A DNA stretch of 63,675 nt, filler included, from Salisapilia sapeloensis CBS 127946 (Eukaryota > Protista > Oomycota): assembly GCA_023334545.1 (NCBI GenBank). It is 5 parts of 5 records of this genome, joined end to end, with 100 filler letters (N's around TTAATTAATTAA, not from the genome) between each part and the next. Parts side by side here need not be neighbours in the genome. Positions count along the whole stretch, not along the records: positions 21,573 to 26,793 come from JAADVB010000630.1; 4 more parts are not named here. One strand, written 5' to 3'. Below the pieces are notes generated by a model that saw nothing but the letters and a program-made list of their open reading frames with translations, made no database searches and was not told where the DNA came from. The position numbers and the translations under genes are program-made. Below are positions 1,036-26,725 of this stretch, piece after piece; the first letter of the stretch is position 1, and every line of letters begins with the position of its first letter.

Positions 1036-3795
1036 ATGGTGGTGCACGGTGAGGAACCAATGTCGTCACCTGAAGCACCGGCAGCTCGGTCGAAAGATGC
1101 TTCTGGTGGCATAAAAGTTCCGGAAGGCGAGGTACATATCGAAACGGACAACGGTGGAGTAGACAGCGAGGAGGGAGAGTCTGAAGATGATGAAGACGAG
1201 GGAGATCCGGATCAAACGATCATGAACATGGGTCGGCATGACCGCATGCAGCGTATTCAAAAGGTCTTGTACGACCAACTCGTCGGTAATGATGAACGTC
1301 TGACGATGGAGCTTCGTGAACGAGAGGAAGAGGTGCGACGGATGAAGCAGAGACGGGAGGATGTGGGCGTCCAGCTCTATGGTGTGCAGCAGCAGTTAGC
1401 ACAGCTTCAAGTAGCTCTGGAAGGCTCTCATCGGAAGCTCACGACGTATCATAACGATCGCTTTGCTGCAGAAGACCTGCTCGATGAGCATAAAGAGCAA
1501 GTGGCGGAACGGAAGGCGTTGGTGGGAAAGCATCGAGCGACGCTGTACAAGACACAGACGGAACTGGACACTCTGAACGCAACGCTGCGGCAGGTTGAAA
1601 AGTATAGTGAAGAGATGAAGTATGAGATAGCTCGGACGCAACGGGAGGCACAGAAAGCCGAAGAGATGATGACGAATATGGAGAAGAGCAAAGTGAAACA
1701 GGATCTGTACATCGATAGTTTGAATGAACAATTGAAGCGACTGGAAGACCAGATTGGAGTGAGTACTGCTCATTTAAAATCACAGCAATTAGAGACTGCG
1801 GCTGCGGAGGAAACGTTGAGAGAGGCTTCTGCTCAGATGGAAGTCGTGGCTTTCGAGAAGAAACAGCTTTTGCAGCAGTGGAAGAGTGCACTCGTTGGAT
1901 TGCAACAACGGGACCAGGCTCTCCAAGCAACGCAGCAGAGTATTTCAAAGGTGAATGAAGAAGATTTGGCGTTGTCCGTGGAAGTGAAGGGGTATAAGGC
2001 ATCGATTGAAAAGGCTCAGCGAGAGCATGAAACCCTCTTGGGCACGGTTGAACGGTTTAATGCTGAGATCCGCTTCGTTGAGGAACAGATTGGATCTTTA
2101 AAGAAGGAGCAAGAGAGATTGGCGAGTCGATATGAGATGCTGACCAAGTCACTGCGACAGACAGAAGCAGAAGAAAGTAAGGTGAAGGAGGAAGGAAAGA
2201 AGCTGGATGGAGAAAACCAGCAAGTCCAGCAGCAGTTAGAAACAACGCAACGTGATCGGCATGTACTTGAAGACCAGGTTGCTAGCCTGAAGAATGAGCA
2301 AACGACAGCGAACAAGGCTGTACATAATCTAACGAAAGAGACTTTGAAGCTGCAGGGTGTAGTCCATGAGAAAGAGAATGCACTCGCAGAACTACGAAAT
2401 GAAATTGCTCGTGTAAACGTAGACATTCTGAATGTCCAATCACACATTGGTCAGCTGGAGGAGGTACAAGGACGTACGGTTGGCGACTTGCAGAATGAAG
2501 ACCGCCGTGTCGAAAAGGTTCAGTTGGAACTTCGTCAGCGCAATGATGAGATTGAAAAGAAGATGCTGCGGCTAGATCGATTAAATAAAAAGTATGAACA
2601 GCTCATGTCGAAAGTAGAAGACGAGAATACTGGGCCGTTGGAAGCAACAATTAAGAATCAAACGAGAGAGACGGCGGAGGTGCGTCGTCGGAATGCAGAG
2701 CTGCAGAAAGAATGGCTACAGATACAAACGGTGCTTGTGAATCTGTCCATTGAATCTCAGGAAATGGGGGAAAAGAATGGAGAGTTGAAAAGTAAGACTA
2801 GTGTACTCGAGCAGAAGCAATTACGATTGATGAACGATCTTGCCAAGATGACACAGGATGTCAAACAACTTCGAACGGTCATCCAGGCCATGCACACTGA
2901 TACGATCAAGCTAAATGAGTTGATTGCGAAGAATACGACGCGACAAGAAGAGCTCGTGAATATGAACCACGGCATGGAGCTTGAGTTTAAGCAGCAGCTA
3001 AAAGAGTTGGAAGCAGAGGCTATGAATGCAGAGAGACGAGCAACAGAGTTGAAAAACGAGAAACAGGAGCTTCTGGATCAGATTGTCGAAGTGGAACGGC
3101 AAATAATGCTATGGGAGAAGAAGATTTTGCTAGAGAAAGAAACGCAAGCAGCTTTGGATCCAGAAGTTGGTCAAGCAGAAGCTCGAAGTATGGAGAAGGA
3201 GATTCATCGCATGCGATTGAGACTTGAGGCTCTGCAGCGTAGCCAGGAGCAAATGCTCATTGATATGGAGCAAGCTGTGCACAAACGAGATTTGCTTGCG
3301 TTACGCGGGCGAAGCAAGAAGGACGCTGATGTAACGTATGCTGCTGTCACGGCCAAGGCATCGACATTGCAGAATAATCTGCAGAAGATGGAGAGGGATA
3401 CGATGAAGCTTGACAAGACGATCAAGAAAAAGATGATTAGTTGTGAAGACTTGACTTTCCAGTTGGAGAAAGCATCAGCCGAGCTGCACGTTGATGAAGA
3501 GCGGGTTGCCACTCTCCAGAAATCTATCAATGACTCGTTGTACGCCAAGCAGCGATTGATTGATGCAGAGTCACGAAAACTGCGATTGTTGCAACGTCTA
3601 GAGGCAGTGCGCAAGGCCGCTGCAACTAAAGGTGTGGACGAAGACAAGGCGAAAAACAACTATGATCGAGCTCGTTCGTCAGTGCTGGTCATTCAGTCTA
3701 TCATTGACAAACTTAAAAGTCAATATCCGCATCTCTCGGAAGTGCTTTCACGTGTTGCAATGCTAGCGGAGGATCCACCGGTGGAAGCTAGTTAG
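1036..3795 (+). CDS. CCDC40: Coiled-coil domain-containing protein 40 (FAP172), axonemal 96-nm ruler / inner dynein arm and N-DRC assembly factor
   Basis: 919-aa single ORF with acidic N-terminus, then long coiled coil carrying CCDC40-type segments REDVGVQLYGVQQQLAQLQ, KQDLYID, QLLQQWKSALVGLQQRD and MEKEIHRMRLR. Confidence 0.88.
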   Translation: MVVHGEEPMSSPEAPAARSKDASGGIKVPEGEVHIETDNGGVDSEEGESEDDEDEGDPDQTIMNMGRHDRMQRIQKVLYDQLVGNDERLTMELREREEEVRRMKQRREDVGVQLYGVQQQLAQLQVALEGSHRKLTTYHNDRFAAEDLLDEHKEQVAERKALVGKHRATLYKTQTELDTLNATLRQVEKYSEEMKYEIARTQREAQKAEEMMTNMEKSKVKQDLYIDSLNEQLKRLEDQIGVSTAHLKSQQLETAAAEETLREASAQMEVVAFEKKQLLQQWKSALVGLQQRDQALQATQQSISKVNEEDLALSVEVKGYKASIEKAQREHETLLGTVERFNAEIRFVEEQIGSLKKEQERLASRYEMLTKSLRQTEAEESKVKEEGKKLDGENQQVQQQLETTQRDRHVLEDQVASLKNEQTTANKAVHNLTKETLKLQGVVHEKENALAELRNEIARVNVDILNVQSHIGQLEEVQGRTVGDLQNEDRRVEKVQLELRQRNDEIEKKMLRLDRLNKKYEQLMSKVEDENTGPLEATIKNQTRETAEVRRRNAELQKEWLQIQTVLVNLSIESQEMGEKNGELKSKTSVLEQKQLRLMNDLAKMTQDVKQLRTVIQAMHTDTIKLNELIAKNTTRQEELVNMNHGMELEFKQQLKELEAEAMNAERRATELKNEKQELLDQIVEVERQIMLWEKKILLEKETQAALDPEVGQAEARSMEKEIHRMRLRLEALQRSQEQMLIDMEQAVHKRDLLALRGRSKKDADVTYAAVTAKASTLQNNLQKMERDTMKLDKTIKKKMISCEDLTFQLEKASAELHVDEERVATLQKSINDSLYAKQRLIDAESRKLRLLQRLEAVRKAAATKGVDEDKAKNNYDRARSSVLVIQSIIDKLKSQYPHLSEVLSRVAMLAEDPPVEAS

Positions 3796-21572: not shown

Positions 21573-22016
21573 CCCCAGATGCTGTGGAGCTCATCCAACG
21601 TACGTTGCTTTGTCTACCTTGTAGTGTGCATTTGGATACGACTTTAACGCTTTCGTGTAGAATTACTGATTCGAGACCCTACAAAGCGGCTCGGAGCCAA
21701 CGGTGCGGAAGAGATCAAGCAGATGCGGTTCTTCGACGCCATCGACTGGGGCAAGCTGGAGCGCATGGAGCTCGAGCCTCCGTTCGTGCCGGACAATGAG
21801 ATCAACGCGGCGCCCCAGGCCGACATCGGGTCCTTTGACACGGTGGGCATCAAGAGTATGAAGCTGTCGGAGGCAGACCAGGCCATGTACAACGACTGGG
21901 ACTACGTTTCCACGGAAGCGTTCCAGCGGGAGGCGGTGGAGTACCTCGAGTGGGAGGCCCAGCATGGTCCATACAACATCGGAAGAAGCTCGAACTCGTG
22001 CTGCGTGATACTATAG
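21573..22016 (+). CDS. 3' fragment of an AGC kinase with GRK-like C-tail and C-terminal CCVIL CaaX motif (5'-truncated by contig edge)
   Basis: Intron 21600-21660; LLIRDPTKRLG...FFDAIDWGKLERMELEPPFVPDNEINAAPQADIGSFD...SNSCCVIL*. Confidence 0.8.
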
Positions 22017-22317: not shown

Positions 22318-22402
22318 CCGAAACCCTCAAGCCGAACTTGAAGAGGATCAGACTCAAGCCACACACGACTTCAAGCAGAATACACGAAACACTGAACCCA
22401 AG

Positions 22403-23251
22403 ATGGAAGTGATCACGGAACCCGCGGTGCGACGCCTGCTCAAGGCGCGCGCGCAAGACATGGAGAAGCTGGAGATCCGCACCAAGTCGCTCTCGGCCTC
22501 CATCAACTACCTCGAGGCCACGCGCTTCACCTTTTACAAGCTGCAGATCCAGCCGACGCACGCGCCGGCCAAGTCATCCTGGACGCTCGCCAAGCGGTAC
22601 TCGGACTTTTACGCCTTCCGGGCCGACCTGCTGACGCGACTGCGCAAGCTCGAGAAGGCGCACGACAGCGCGGCCTCCAAGGCTGTCTCCGAGGAGCGCG
22701 CGTTCGTCCGCGAGTGCCTGCAGCGCCACGTGCTGGAGGCAGATTTCCCGAAAAAGTACCTCCGCAGCGACAACGAGGCCATCACAGCGGAGCGGAGGAC
22801 CAAGCTGCAGGAGTTTGTCCGCGGACTCTTGGACGCCTACGCCGAGATGGCGGCGTACCTGTACAATCGCCAGCGCGCTGGGTCGTCCACGTGCGAGAAC
22901 GACGGCGAGGATGCGGACTTGGTAAAGCAGACGTACGCTCGGATCGAGAAGTTTCTGATGGTGCCCGAGAGTCAGAAGGAGGCGGACCGTCGGCAGGCCG
23001 CTGCGATCTTGGCACTGGAAGATGCGAACGAAGTGGCGACGCACACGAGCGACTCGGAGCACACGTGCTGCATCTGCCTTGACGGAGAGGAGGAAGAAGC
23101 GGAGGGGAACCGAATGGTGAGTCTACCGTGCCGACACCTGTTCCACGAGGACTGCGTGATCGACTGGTTTTCGGCGAGCGCGACATGTCCACTGTGCCGT
23201 CAGCCTGCGTACGACGAGGAGGCTCCTGCTTTTGACGTGTCGATCAACTGA
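22403..23251 (+). CDS. PX domain + RING-H2 E3 ubiquitin ligase
   Basis: PX motifs TFYKLQI...WTLAKRYSDFYAFR...FPKK...ERRTKLQEF; RING-H2 CICL...LPCRHLFHEDCVIDW...CPLCR. Start set at ATG 22403 on promoter position and codon style. Confidence 0.88.
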   Translation: MEVITEPAVRRLLKARAQDMEKLEIRTKSLSASINYLEATRFTFYKLQIQPTHAPAKSSWTLAKRYSDFYAFRADLLTRLRKLEKAHDSAASKAVSEERAFVRECLQRHVLEADFPKKYLRSDNEAITAERRTKLQEFVRGLLDAYAEMAAYLYNRQRAGSSTCENDGEDADLVKQTYARIEKFLMVPESQKEADRRQAAAILALEDANEVATHTSDSEHTCCICLDGEEEEAEGNRMVSLPCRHLFHEDCVIDWFSASATCPLCRQPAYDEEAPAFDVSIN

Positions 23252-23702
23252 TGGCCGGTCGCGAACGAGATAAGTTTATTGTAGGAGGGGAGCGGGTCCG
23301 TCGACAGCTCGTTTGCTCCTGCTTGTGATTTAGGAAAGAGTATGAACACTGGAATGTACATTTGCATCATTGAGGCTCGTGTTGCTTTTGGTTTGGCTAG
23401 TAGATAGCTTCTTGCGTGTGTTGAAGCTGGCGGGAGAAGACCTGCGGATTGTATCCTTGCTGAGAAGTGGGAGTACGTGCCTGCAGAGGTACGCGCAGTA
23501 GACGGAGTGACTAAAAGGCCGCTTGTATTCTCCATCTACACACAAGCGGCGCAACTACCTACGTGGACGCTCCTGCACGCCCATCGGAAACGTAGCCACG
23601 TCCAGATACTCGTCACTACACCCGTGCGTCTCTCTACCAGATCCTACCACAAAAGTCGAAAGTGGTAAATCCACCGCTGCGATCCGAAGGTTGAAGTCGG
23701 TT

Positions 23703-23719
23703 TCCATTCCGCAATTTCC
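23703..23719 (+). promoter_or_regulatory. INR+FPR core promoter of the zinc-finger gene
   Basis: TCCATTCCGCAATTTCC, about 42 nt upstream of ATG 23761. Confidence 0.6.
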
Positions 23720-23760: not shown

Positions 23761-24451
23761 ATGCCACCCAGAAGCAAGCCACCCGCAAGGTTTCCATCCT
23801 CCATCTACGACTACGCCGCCAAGCGGACGGTGGATAGAGACGTCCAGGAGCTCGACCTGGTCTCTGGCTGGTGGATCCGATGCGCCAGGTTACTTGTTCC
23901 CTCGACACGCTTTATCATTCCGTCCTCAACTCTGACATAGCTGCTTCGGAAGAAAGCAACGGCTCCGACATCCGTTCGACCCAGACGCCTGGTACCAACA
24001 CAAGCGCAAGCCTTCGCACCAGGCCACGGCCGAGGCCATGGGCGGAAACTCGGGCGCCGCCACGCTGCATTCCAACGTCGACGTCGACTTCGCTACAATC
24101 CTGAACGCGTCCGCTGAGCGAGACATGGGTCTTATCAGCGTGCACCAGCAAGCGGTGGATTCGCGTGTGGAGCGAGATCGCAAGGCAGAGGATGCGATCC
24201 TTGCGCTGACGAGGCTCGTCACGGAGCAGCAGCAGGACATCGCTCAACTATATGCAGTCGTCCACGGTCTAAAGAAGCGAGTCTCGCTTTCAGAGCAAGA
24301 AAAGAGTGCAAACGCGCCAGCCATGTCCGATGAGCGAGACAGGAAGCAACACTGTGGGCTAGATGACAGCGCATCTACCAACAGCCTCTCTAGGAATGAC
24401 GATAGTACGAACATCATTGCGTCACTTGTGGACTCATCCTCGTCTCCTTGA
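23761..24451 (+). CDS. Hypothetical protein (212 aa) with N-terminal C2H2-like zinc finger and coiled coil, 2 exons
   Basis: Intron 23889-23940 joins MPPRSK...GWWIRCAS to CFGRKQRLRHPFDPDAWYQHKRKPSH and continues into ORF 24038-24451. Confidence 0.68.
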
Positions 24452-24531
24452 AGGATAGCTTTTCGGCAATTGGACTAAGTCATCAGGTTCACATTCATTT
24501 CACTCGCTTAGGCTAGACCGCTAGACTGTTT

Positions 24532-24992
24532 CTACTGGTTGCGACGTCCTCCGCGCTTGTTGTACCAACGGTACTTGCACCACGGCCAGCGGTACGATCC
24601 ACGATAGCATCGGGAGTCAAATCGGCACCACGGCCAGCTACGGGAGCCCCGGAAGCACCGTCTTCTGAAGCGCTCCGCCATTTCCTCCGACACTTCATCG
24701 TCCGCCATCATACCCTCGTCTTCCGCAAGAGCAAAGTCTTCATACGCGATGTCATCCTCCATAAAGGCGAGATCTTGGTTCTCCGCTTCATCCATTGCAA
24801 AGCCAGCGTCTTGGTTCTCCGTTCCGTCATCTCCTTCCAAGTGGCGGAGCTGGGTACCTGCATCATGACAAGTTTAGTATCGGTGGGAACGAAGCGCTAG
24901 CATGGCGGGACGTTACCGGTCGGGGTGGCGGCAGCGTAGGACGTCGCAGCGACGGTAGCAACCGTTAAGGCGAAGAGCGTGGCAGATTTCAT
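24532..24992 (-). CDS. Secreted prepro-peptide (133 aa): signal peptide, acidic pro-region, cationic Arg/Trp/Cys-rich tandem-repeat C-terminal peptide (antimicrobial-peptide-like)
   Basis: Exon 1 24992-24917 (MKSATLFALTVATVAATSYAAATPT), 59-nt intron 24916-24858 (GTAACG...ACTAAAC...GCAG), exon 2 24857-24532 in frame; upstream INR/FPR element. Confidence 0.85.
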
Positions 24993-25050
24993 CGTGGAGA
25001 GTGGTGCGATCGAAGTGGAAGGTTGGATGGAGTCTTGCGTGGGGCGAAGC

Positions 25051-25066
25051 AAATTCGCAGATGAGC
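25051..25066 (-). promoter_or_regulatory. INR+FPR core promoter of the prepro-peptide gene
   Basis: GCTCATCTGCGAATTT matches 15 of 16 positions of the oomycete core consensus GCTCATTYBNNNWTTY, 58 nt upstream of ATG 24992. Confidence 0.7.
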
Positions 25067-25498
25067 TTTGGTGGCGAGCGCGATGGAGTGGGCGAGTTCC
25101 AGGGCGTCTCGAGGAATTGCGCCGAGCGTCTGCGAGAAATGGCCGGACAGGGCGTTGCTTGACTCCAAGTTTGGACGATATTTCCTGTCGACAGGAGTCG
25201 ACATCGTAAGACTCTTCCTGAGCGTGTTCCGAGGTCATGCGTCTATTAAACCGCCGACGCTAGCATCTTTCCGATACTTATCACGAGCACTGAAGCACAA
25301 TGAAGCTGGATTCATTTCGACCTCCGCTCTGGTCGCTAGGTTTCCACGTGCAGCATGTCACTCGGACAGGCATACGGCAAGCTCCTGTCTATCGATAGCG
25401 ATGCGAAAGGATTCGGACACACGTAAGCAAATGCTCGGTCGGCACGTTGACCGGTGAACTAGACTTCTCTTCGCGAGACGACTACGACTACGTTCCAT

Positions 25499-26725
25499 TC
25501 ACTCGTTACGATCCTCCTCGTCCAGCGCGTTCTCTACATCTTCTTCTCTTCCCCACTCTCCATCTTGGGCATCCGCCACCTCCTCCGTGGCCTGAAGCCA
25601 GTTGGTCTCCAGTACCTCCCTCACCGACATGCGCTTCACAGGGTTCACCGTCAGCAACCCCTCCGCCACCTCCAGTAGGTCGTCCGACAGCTTACAGATC
25701 GCAGACTGCTCGAGATACATGGCTTTGAGGTAGGCCCGGAGTCCGTCTCGTAGGAAGATTTGGAACCCGTTGTCGTCTTTGGACGCCGAGTCGAACAAAG
25801 GCTTCTTCGTCAGCAGCGTGATCAGGATGATGCCCATAGCCCACGTGTCGGCCTTCATCATATCGACAAGACGGCCGTCCTGCGTCGCCTTTGTCGGACT
25901 CCCGCTCCCGCTCCTCCCTGTGCTGCGGAGAGATCCAGCCATATTAGCGTTCGCGTACAGCTCCGGCGCGGTGTACATCTTCCGCTGGGGCGGAGGTCGC
26001 TTGAGCGGCTGCGGCGCGTTCTCGGGGCCGACGAAGACCGCCCGATCAAAGTCTCCGACCTTGAGCACGTTGTCCTGTGTGATGAACAGGTTCTCGAGCG
26101 CCAGGTCTGCGTGGGCGACACCGACGGCGTGCAAGAACCCGACGCCGATGCAGAGGTGGTGGAAGAGCTTCTTGACCTCCTCCTCGGAAGGAGACTCGAT
26201 GAGAGGCAGGTCCGGGTCCGGCGTGTCGATGTACGCATTCCGCATGTTGCCGAGCTCGCAGAACTCGAAGATCAGGTGCACCCGGTCCTTGAAGGCAAAG
26301 TGACCGCACAGACGGACGATGTTCGGGTGCACGATGCCCACCTGCGTCCGTAGGACGTGCCAGATGTAGTTCTGGATCTCGAGCTCGTTCTGCAGCGTCC
26401 CGAGCGTCTCGCTCGCCTTCTCCTTGCGGACGCACTTTTCCACGAAGAGGTAGGTTTCTCCCTTGCGCTGGAGCTTGGCGTCCGACACGACGTTGACTCT
26501 CCGGAGAGGGTCCAGTTTCTGGCACAAGTTCCACTCGGTCGACAGGTTCTGCAGTCGAGTGAACGGTTTCGGGACGCTGGACGACACGATGGACTTTTGC
26601 CGACGCGTTGCCGCTGCTCGCCGACCGGAGGGCATCGCTGCCAGCGCAGGGCTCGTCGCCGCCGTCTCGCTCTTCCTGCTCGCTTCACTCCGATTATCCT
26701 GCGGCTCCGACTGTCGGTTCCCCAT
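25499..26725 (-). CDS. Atypical Ser/Thr protein kinase or pseudokinase (CAMK-like) with possible N-myristoylation site
   Basis: MGNRQS start; HPNIVRL, IFEFCELG, HADLALEN, KVGDFD, YTAPE, KADTWAMG and VKRMSV; no clear Gly-rich loop. Confidence 0.85.
   Translation of the reverse strand: MGNRQSEPQDNRSEASRKSETAATSPALAAMPSGRRAAATRRQKSIVSSSVPKPFTRLQNLSTEWNLCQKLDPLRRVNVVSDAKLQRKGETYLFVEKCVRKEKASETLGTLQNELEIQNYIWHVLRTQVGIVHPNIVRLCGHFAFKDRVHLIFEFCELGNMRNAYIDTPDPDLPLIESPSEEEVKKLFHHLCIGVGFLHAVGVAHADLALENLFITQDNVLKVGDFDRAVFVGPENAPQPLKRPPPQRKMYTAPELYANANMAGSLRSTGRSGSGSPTKATQDGRLVDMMKADTWAMGIILITLLTKKPLFDSASKDDNGFQIFLRDGLRAYLKAMYLEQSAICKLSDDLLEVAEGLLTVNPVKRMSVREVLETNWLQATEEVADAQDGEWGREEDVENALDEEDRNE

Follow-up and report, generated by a model that had tools for sequence, protein, structure and literature searches.

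What does the short minus-strand locus between positions 25064 and 24532 of the window (the whole 63,675-nucleotide stretch of DNA analysed here) encode, and could its product be the precursor of a secreted cationic peptide? An initial annotation had proposed a spliced gene with a 133-aa product of prepro-peptide layout. Assembling the model by script from the minus-strand reading of 24300..25400 gave this same small spliced gene on the minus strand, with a 133-aa product. Exon 1 (24992..24917, 76 nt, minus strand) begins with the ATG at 24992 and encodes a signal-peptide-like segment, MKSATLFALTVATVAATSYA, together with the first residues of the pro-region. It is followed by a 59-nt intron (24916..24858, minus strand) with GT..AG borders (GTAACG...GATGCAG), a CTAAA branch-like element and an in-frame stop. 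Exon 2 (24857..24532, minus strand, stop included) consists of a 102-aa ORF whose acidic part (24857..24670, TQLRHLEGDD...EEMAER) precedes a 45-aa basic tail (24669..24535), both on the minus strand, as is the TAG stop codon read from the sequence at 24534..24532. Because a stop lies in frame within the intron, splicing is required to connect the signal-peptide exon with the long ORF: intron retention would cut the product at 32 aa, and removal of the intron fuses this exon in frame with the 102-aa ORF. An alternative start, at the ATG at 25238 of a longer in-frame upstream ORF, was considered and rejected, as this ORF carries no coding signal (GC3 0.55) and its start lies upstream of the core-promoter block described below.

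Four public runs from one study (X1-X4), which represent two samples, contain the stretch. The depth of their contigs is very uneven, from below 10 to above 1500, and GT..AG joints occur at three places; thus, the contigs behave as RNA, although the record itself does not say so. A joint in X3 and X4, that is, in one run per sample (24854->24914, cut +3; depth 20-22), equals the predicted 24857|24917 exactly, and it reads CT..AC on the plus strand, which makes it a minus-strand intron. The shorter side of this junction unitig comprises just 26 letters (plus 4 ambiguous ones), and the junction is exact, canonical and was predicted beforehand. The intron that the initial annotation had called clean is a 59-nt GT..AG intron whose predicted junction is present in the contigs of both samples. 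Beside the spliced form there is an intron-retaining unitig (24829..24943), and in X1 and X2 the sole assembled path across the intron is unspliced and part of long contigs. The transcript signal over the intron is largely unspliced (depth 27-36, versus 20-22 for the spliced form), and it may correspond to pre-mRNA, to read-through from the upstream kinase gene or to antisense transcription from the convergent gene, three origins that contigs cannot distinguish. In addition, the RNA-like contigs show zero substitutions and zero indels relative to the window, which excludes a frameshift artefact.

The coding signal was scored in six frames with a codon table derived from about 1000 codons of the neighbouring genes. 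In the acidic part, the candidate frame reaches +27.3, with the other frames at 8.7 or below, and its score per codon (0.44) resembles that of the neighbouring kinase (0.43). The candidate frame also ranks first in the tail (-3.4, versus -7.5 or below), where it is the best of six poor scores with a GC3 of 0.71; exon 1 and the tail both have mediocre codon scores. Across the acidic and basic parts, the GC3 of the candidate frame stays at 0.61-0.72. As for its promoter, the oomycete elements INR (YCAYTYY) and FPR (MWTTTNC) stand 2 nt apart in a 16-nt block, and their combination has been tied to genes with a role in infection and to expression that is higher and regulated during development (PMC3599244). 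Such a block, TCATCTG-CG-AATTTGC, occupies 25064..25049 on the minus strand, begins 72 nt upstream of the ATG and is the sole INR+FPR block that a pattern scan found on the minus strand of the 5.2-kb piece holding the candidate. Its FPR matches at 7/7 positions and its 2-nt spacer is correct, but the INR matches at only 5/7, so the earlier description of a near-perfect core promoter was slightly generous. A scan for bacterial promoters and terminators was empty, which is irrelevant for an oomycete gene. With the predicted junction in the X3 and X4 contigs, and with reading frame, GC3 and promoter block in agreement, our data support the candidate as a genuine oomycete gene that is transcribed and correctly spliced.

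The candidate lies downstream of a protein kinase gene (25499..26725, minus strand), and its other neighbours are a PX+RING gene (22403..23251, plus strand) and a convergent gene for a 212-aa protein (exons 23761..23888 and 23941..24451, plus strand). The best database relatives of the kinase and the PX+RING protein are 45-54% identical and are spread about equally over Globisporangium, Pythium, Phytophthora, Nothophytophthora, Lagenidium and Bremia; an exact-sequence look-up of the kinase gave no match, with no near-identical protein on record. These similarities, together with the FPR element and introns of 52-61 nt, point to a peronosporomycete oomycete that belongs to none of the genera sampled and annotated so far. 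The PX+RING gene is apparently very highly expressed in these samples, its contigs (22318..23296) standing at a depth of 800-1550 against 30-150 for its neighbours. The convergent gene has a 52-nt GT..AG intron (23889..23940), whose joint is seen in all four runs, and a perfect INR+2+FPR block, CCATTCC-GC-AATTTCC, starting at 23704 on the plus strand. Its product has a weak SlyX-like coiled coil, and the homologs of this gene in Pythium oligandrum (L005) and Globisporangium splendens (L004) are separated from the PX-RING gene by a few kb. Its stop is just 80 nt from that of the candidate, so the 3' UTRs of the two genes probably overlap. At 24355..24384, a separate contig of 1350-1536 nt (depth 78-163), present in all four runs, has only this 30-mer in common with the window and then continues with TTTTTTCAGCAGTGATGAAAACATGGATCT. 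Position 24385 has no GT donor, and the match may reflect repetition of the 30-mer, an allelic or structural variant, or a chimeric assembly. Finally, a 61-nt GT..AG intron at 21600..21660 (plus strand), with its joint in X2 only, lies in the 3' portion of an AGC-kinase-like gene truncated at the edge of the piece.

Turning to the protein, its signal-peptide-like start has a Kyte-Doolittle mean of 2.24 over residues 6-16 and, by inspection, small residues at -3/-1 of SYA|A. The pro-region (residues 22-88, 67 aa) contains 23 Asp/Glu, all of them encoded in exon 2, is built in its acidic part of loose repeats of about 12 aa (ENQDxxF / EDFA) and ends in EEMAER. The 45-aa tail has 13 R, 2 K, 1 D, 5 W and 4 C, with a pI of 11.5. 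At pH 7, the charge is -21.1 for the pro-region, +13.7 for the tail and about -7 for the whole of the predicted secreted protein. Recounting thus agrees with the earlier description of the tail composition, of its net charge of about +14, of the 23 Asp/Glu and of the EEMAER end, and the sequence likewise bears out the prepro layout itself, in which a signal-peptide-like N-terminus leads into an anionic block (about -21) and then a cationic one (about +14). The opposing charges of an anionic propiece and a cationic C-terminal peptide, which define a class of host-defence precursors, are present here. The tail also carries basic clusters, RRR (90-92), KR (126-127) and RR (130-131), that frame its Cys-loop core, with ER|F-RRR before C93 and KR plus RR after N125, and sequence inspection gives ER|F, RRR, KR and RR as candidate cut points. 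In the precursors of animal host-defence peptides, an anionic propiece neutralises the mature peptide and prevents autotoxicity, and the cut points are often KR, ER or RR (PMC7073735). The charge segregation and the ER/KR/RR cut points of the candidate match this net-charge-balance layout, which supports its reading as a precursor.

The interpretation that we favour, with a probability of roughly 35%, is that the gene encodes a precursor, masked by charge, of a cationic peptide that is stabilised by disulfides and acts on surfaces or membranes. A cleavable signal peptide would direct the product into the secretory pathway, and the 67-aa anionic pro-region would electrostatically mask the 45-aa cationic tail inside the producer. 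Cleavage at one or several of the basic sites (ER|FRRR, KR, RR) would then release a peptide of about 34-45 aa, rich in Arg, Trp and Tyr, which two disulfides may stabilise by forming either a pair of C-x9-C loops or a C1-C4/C2-C3 hairpin ladder. Once free, the peptide could bind the anionic surfaces or membranes of other cells, most likely those of competing microbes and possibly those of host cells. The literature on WPWC-type motifs and on Kex2-type processing in oomycetes offered nothing useful. AlphaFold2 returned unconfident models for the 102-aa ORF (pLDDT 51) and for the 45-aa tail (pLDDT 50), and a complex prediction of pro-region and tail scored 0.00, which bears neither way on masking.

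The same charge architecture could also belong to a secreted block polyampholyte that is never processed and works intact. It might form part of the surface or wall or serve as an adhesive, for instance if charge and cation-pi contacts drive its self-coacervation, or it might bind glucan or cellulose through its Trp and Tyr residues. Such a protein would account for the strong segregation of charge and for a tail that is 27% aromatic, and it would dispense with cleavage of the precursor, a step that we only infer. Moreover, four Cys with aromatic residues recall small carbohydrate-binding modules. However, Pfam gave no match to a binding module, CBM1 included, at a threshold as loose as E 0.1, the tail is short and single-copy, without the repeat expansion typical of structural proteins, and the positions of the basic clusters coincide exactly with the edges of the Cys-loop core. 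Weighing these points, we regard an unprocessed polyampholyte as unlikely.

Beyond its charge, the most distinctive property of the tail is its internal duplication. As the initial annotation had noted, it holds two RC[FY]RGSxxWPWC[RK][FY] modules, RCFRGSRSWPWCRF and RCYRGSYRWPWCKY, whose cysteines, at residues 93/103 and 109/119, form C-x9-C twice (C93-x9-C103, x5, C109-x9-C119). The two modules are identical at 9/14 residues. When the tail was shuffled 5000 times with its composition preserved, none of the shuffles reached the observed module identity of 9/12, the maximum being 8. In the DNA, this corresponds to a direct repeat with 48-nt spacing and 72% identity, and Tandem Repeats Finder reported no repeat in the candidate because the copies are too diverged at this level. 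Among the nine residues identical between the modules, seven have degenerate codons, and at four of these seven the two copies differ in codon; NG86, on 14 codons only, gives a dN of 0.23 with saturated dS. The different synonymous codons and the saturated dS indicate an old duplication in which the peptide motif was kept, and the module motif looks conserved at the peptide level.

The initial annotation had proposed searching for paralogs and repeat-number variants, and every search was blank. No relative was found among 5.8 billion proteins in a word-indexed search, among JGI metagenome contigs, in the ESM Atlas (with the whole ORF or with the tail alone) or among PDB sequences, where the single match was an irrelevant lectin (E=1). 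The 102-aa exon-2 ORF matched 0 Pfam families at E<=0.1, a search that included the CBM1, knottin and defensin models. An exhaustive phmmer search of 1.84 billion representative proteins likewise gave no relative; its one match, P0022, is an ORF of eight or so tandem GIEWPLCQGRARVLNG units that matches through its WP.C/GR repetition, and was rejected as a tandem-repeat artefact. Synteny was examined in six loci around homologs of the kinase, PX-RING and convergent 212-aa genes, from Pythium oligandrum, Globisporangium splendens and four Logan assemblies, and tblastn and composition scans revealed no candidate-like gene beside the homologs of the three neighbours. The neighbourhood is rearranged in these six loci, so a missing ortholog there is weak evidence. 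In one of the Logan assemblies (L001, SRR15309551), from a related oomycete, a 99-aa secreted 8-Cys protein is encoded directly upstream of the kinase homolog (1832..2131, plus strand). It has two C-x7-C-x5-WC-x-W-x4/5-C modules, and a second ORF with the same WCxW motif lies nearby (about 788, minus strand). These WCxW proteins show no similarity to the candidate by tblastn and may form a separate small Cys-rich secreted family.

One way to read this isolation is that the locus is a young, lineage-specific orphan transcript, possibly born de novo and with little or no function, whose composition would come from GC-rich sequence and a local 48-nt duplication. The blanks in 1.84 billion representative proteins, metagenome contigs, the ESM Atlas, Pfam and PDB would fit, as would the lack of the gene beside the homologs of all three neighbours in the six related loci, its high intron retention and the mediocre codon score of its tail and exon 1. 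However, the splice joins the signal-peptide exon to the ORF with the frame precisely restored, the gene has an oomycete core promoter block, its acidic part scores per codon like the neighbouring kinase, and the module pair differs by many synonymous and few radical changes. The lineage is also barely sampled, with best neighbour identities of 45-54%, and small spliced genes are poorly called; 'orphan' here therefore means that no relative is present in the available data, and the blank homology is weak evidence. A young transcript of little or no function seems improbable to us.

A further possibility is that the protein is a host-translocated effector, with a degenerate RxLR-dEER-type leader (RHL at residues 30-32, then EEMAER) and an Arg/Trp-rich tail that would act inside host cells, either as the effector itself or as a cell-entry or nuclear-targeting module. 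Like oomycete RxLR-dEER effectors, which are small, secreted and lineage-specific, as the candidate is predicted to be, it combines a signal peptide-like start and an RxL tripeptide from residue 30, within the window used for RxLR prediction, with an acidic stretch ending in ER. Arg/Trp-rich peptides are, in addition, classic cell-penetrating sequences. The degenerate dEER pattern [ED][ED].{0,3}[KR] (Ai et al.) matches EEMAER at residue 83, but such a relaxed match is trivial in a stretch with 23 D/E, and the strict form, [ED][ED][KR], is absent. The defining R.LR, which the relaxed regex expects within about 40 residues downstream of the signal peptide and the original regex within 96, occurs nowhere in the protein, which has only RHLE at 30-33, so both published regexes fail, as does PEXEL (R.L.[EQD]). 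The ER follows RHL by 53 residues, the limit being 40, and a Pfam search revealed no WY-type or other effector domain. The class motifs CRN LxLFLAK, CHxC, CCG and YxSL[RK] are likewise missing from the candidate protein. An effector is, in our estimation, quite improbable, and what probability remains falls to a wrong start, to non-secretion or to other roles.

Returning to the masked precursor that we favour, its closest parallels in layout are the anionic-propiece precursors, such as those of mammalian alpha-defensins and frog skin peptides. In them, as in the predicted layout of the candidate, a signal peptide is followed by an acidic propiece and a C-terminal cationic peptide, the charges roughly balance and basic or ER-type cut points mark the border (PMC7073735). 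In contrast, the candidate has no similarity to them in sequence or Cys pattern, its producer is a stramenopile and not an animal, its propiece over-compensates (-21 vs +14) and its processing is a prediction. The tail also shares its shortness, its very cationic, aromatic-rich character and its four Cys with the disulfide-stabilised beta-hairpin Arg-rich peptides tachyplesin, polyphemusin, gomesin, protegrin and arenicin, and a C1-C4/C2-C3 ladder is geometrically possible in it. Its CFRG / CYRG strings recall tachyplesin. Yet it is twice as long, spaces its cysteines as C-x9-C / x5 / C-x9-C and holds a Pro inside each loop, and the PDB sequence search gave no similarity of the tachyplesin or protegrin type. 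In tachyplesin and gomesin precursors, moreover, the acidic piece is C-terminal to the peptide, not N-terminal. With indolicidin and tritrpticin the tail has in common a WPW in an Arg-rich context, but these peptides are 13 residues long, Cys-free and cathelicidin-derived, whereas the WPW of the candidate sits in a duplicated Cys loop. The resemblance to indolicidin, tritrpticin, tachyplesin and protegrin that the initial annotation had drawn is one of composition and not of homology.

Animals, plants and fungi are well-known sources of cationic peptides that are gene-encoded, processed and Cys-stabilised. In oomycetes such peptides are, to our knowledge, essentially undescribed, the only reported protein antimicrobials being long disordered domains from Albugo. 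In Albugo candida, the cationic disordered C-terminal domains of the secreted proteins C06 and C14 inhibit bacteria with an activity that tracks net charge, and their release by proteolysis has been proposed (bioRxiv 10.1101/2022.05.16.492175). Like these, the candidate is predicted to be a secreted oomycete protein with a cationic C-terminal region. However, the C06/C14 domains span 129-165 aa, are disordered and lack Cys loops, Trp richness and an anionic propiece, and they are unrelated to the candidate in sequence. The earlier remark that oomycete antimicrobials of this type were undescribed should be softened in view of the Albugo precedent, although the Albugo proteins are long, Cys-free and unrelated.

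It is possible, if doubtful, that the candidate is the first representative of a class of oomycete ribosomal peptides not yet described, in which a self-neutralised precursor would release a duplicated Cys-looped Arg/Trp (WPWC) peptide deployed against competing microbes or for entering or binding host cells. If the peptide is released and active, it would provide a compact new scaffold of two WPWC loops with a built-in anionic safety catch, and an entry point for studying the competition of oomycetes with bacteria and fungi or their interaction with host surfaces. The case also illustrates that current protein databases do not show small secreted genes with introns when these come from oomycete lineages with little sampling. 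By our analysis, the candidate would belong to none of the families compared here, and its likeness to antimicrobial peptide precursors would be one of layout and composition. Cationic secreted antibacterials have already been reported from oomycetes, in Albugo; what is new in this gene is the compact duplicated Cys-loop WPWC peptide preceded by an N-terminal acidic piece.
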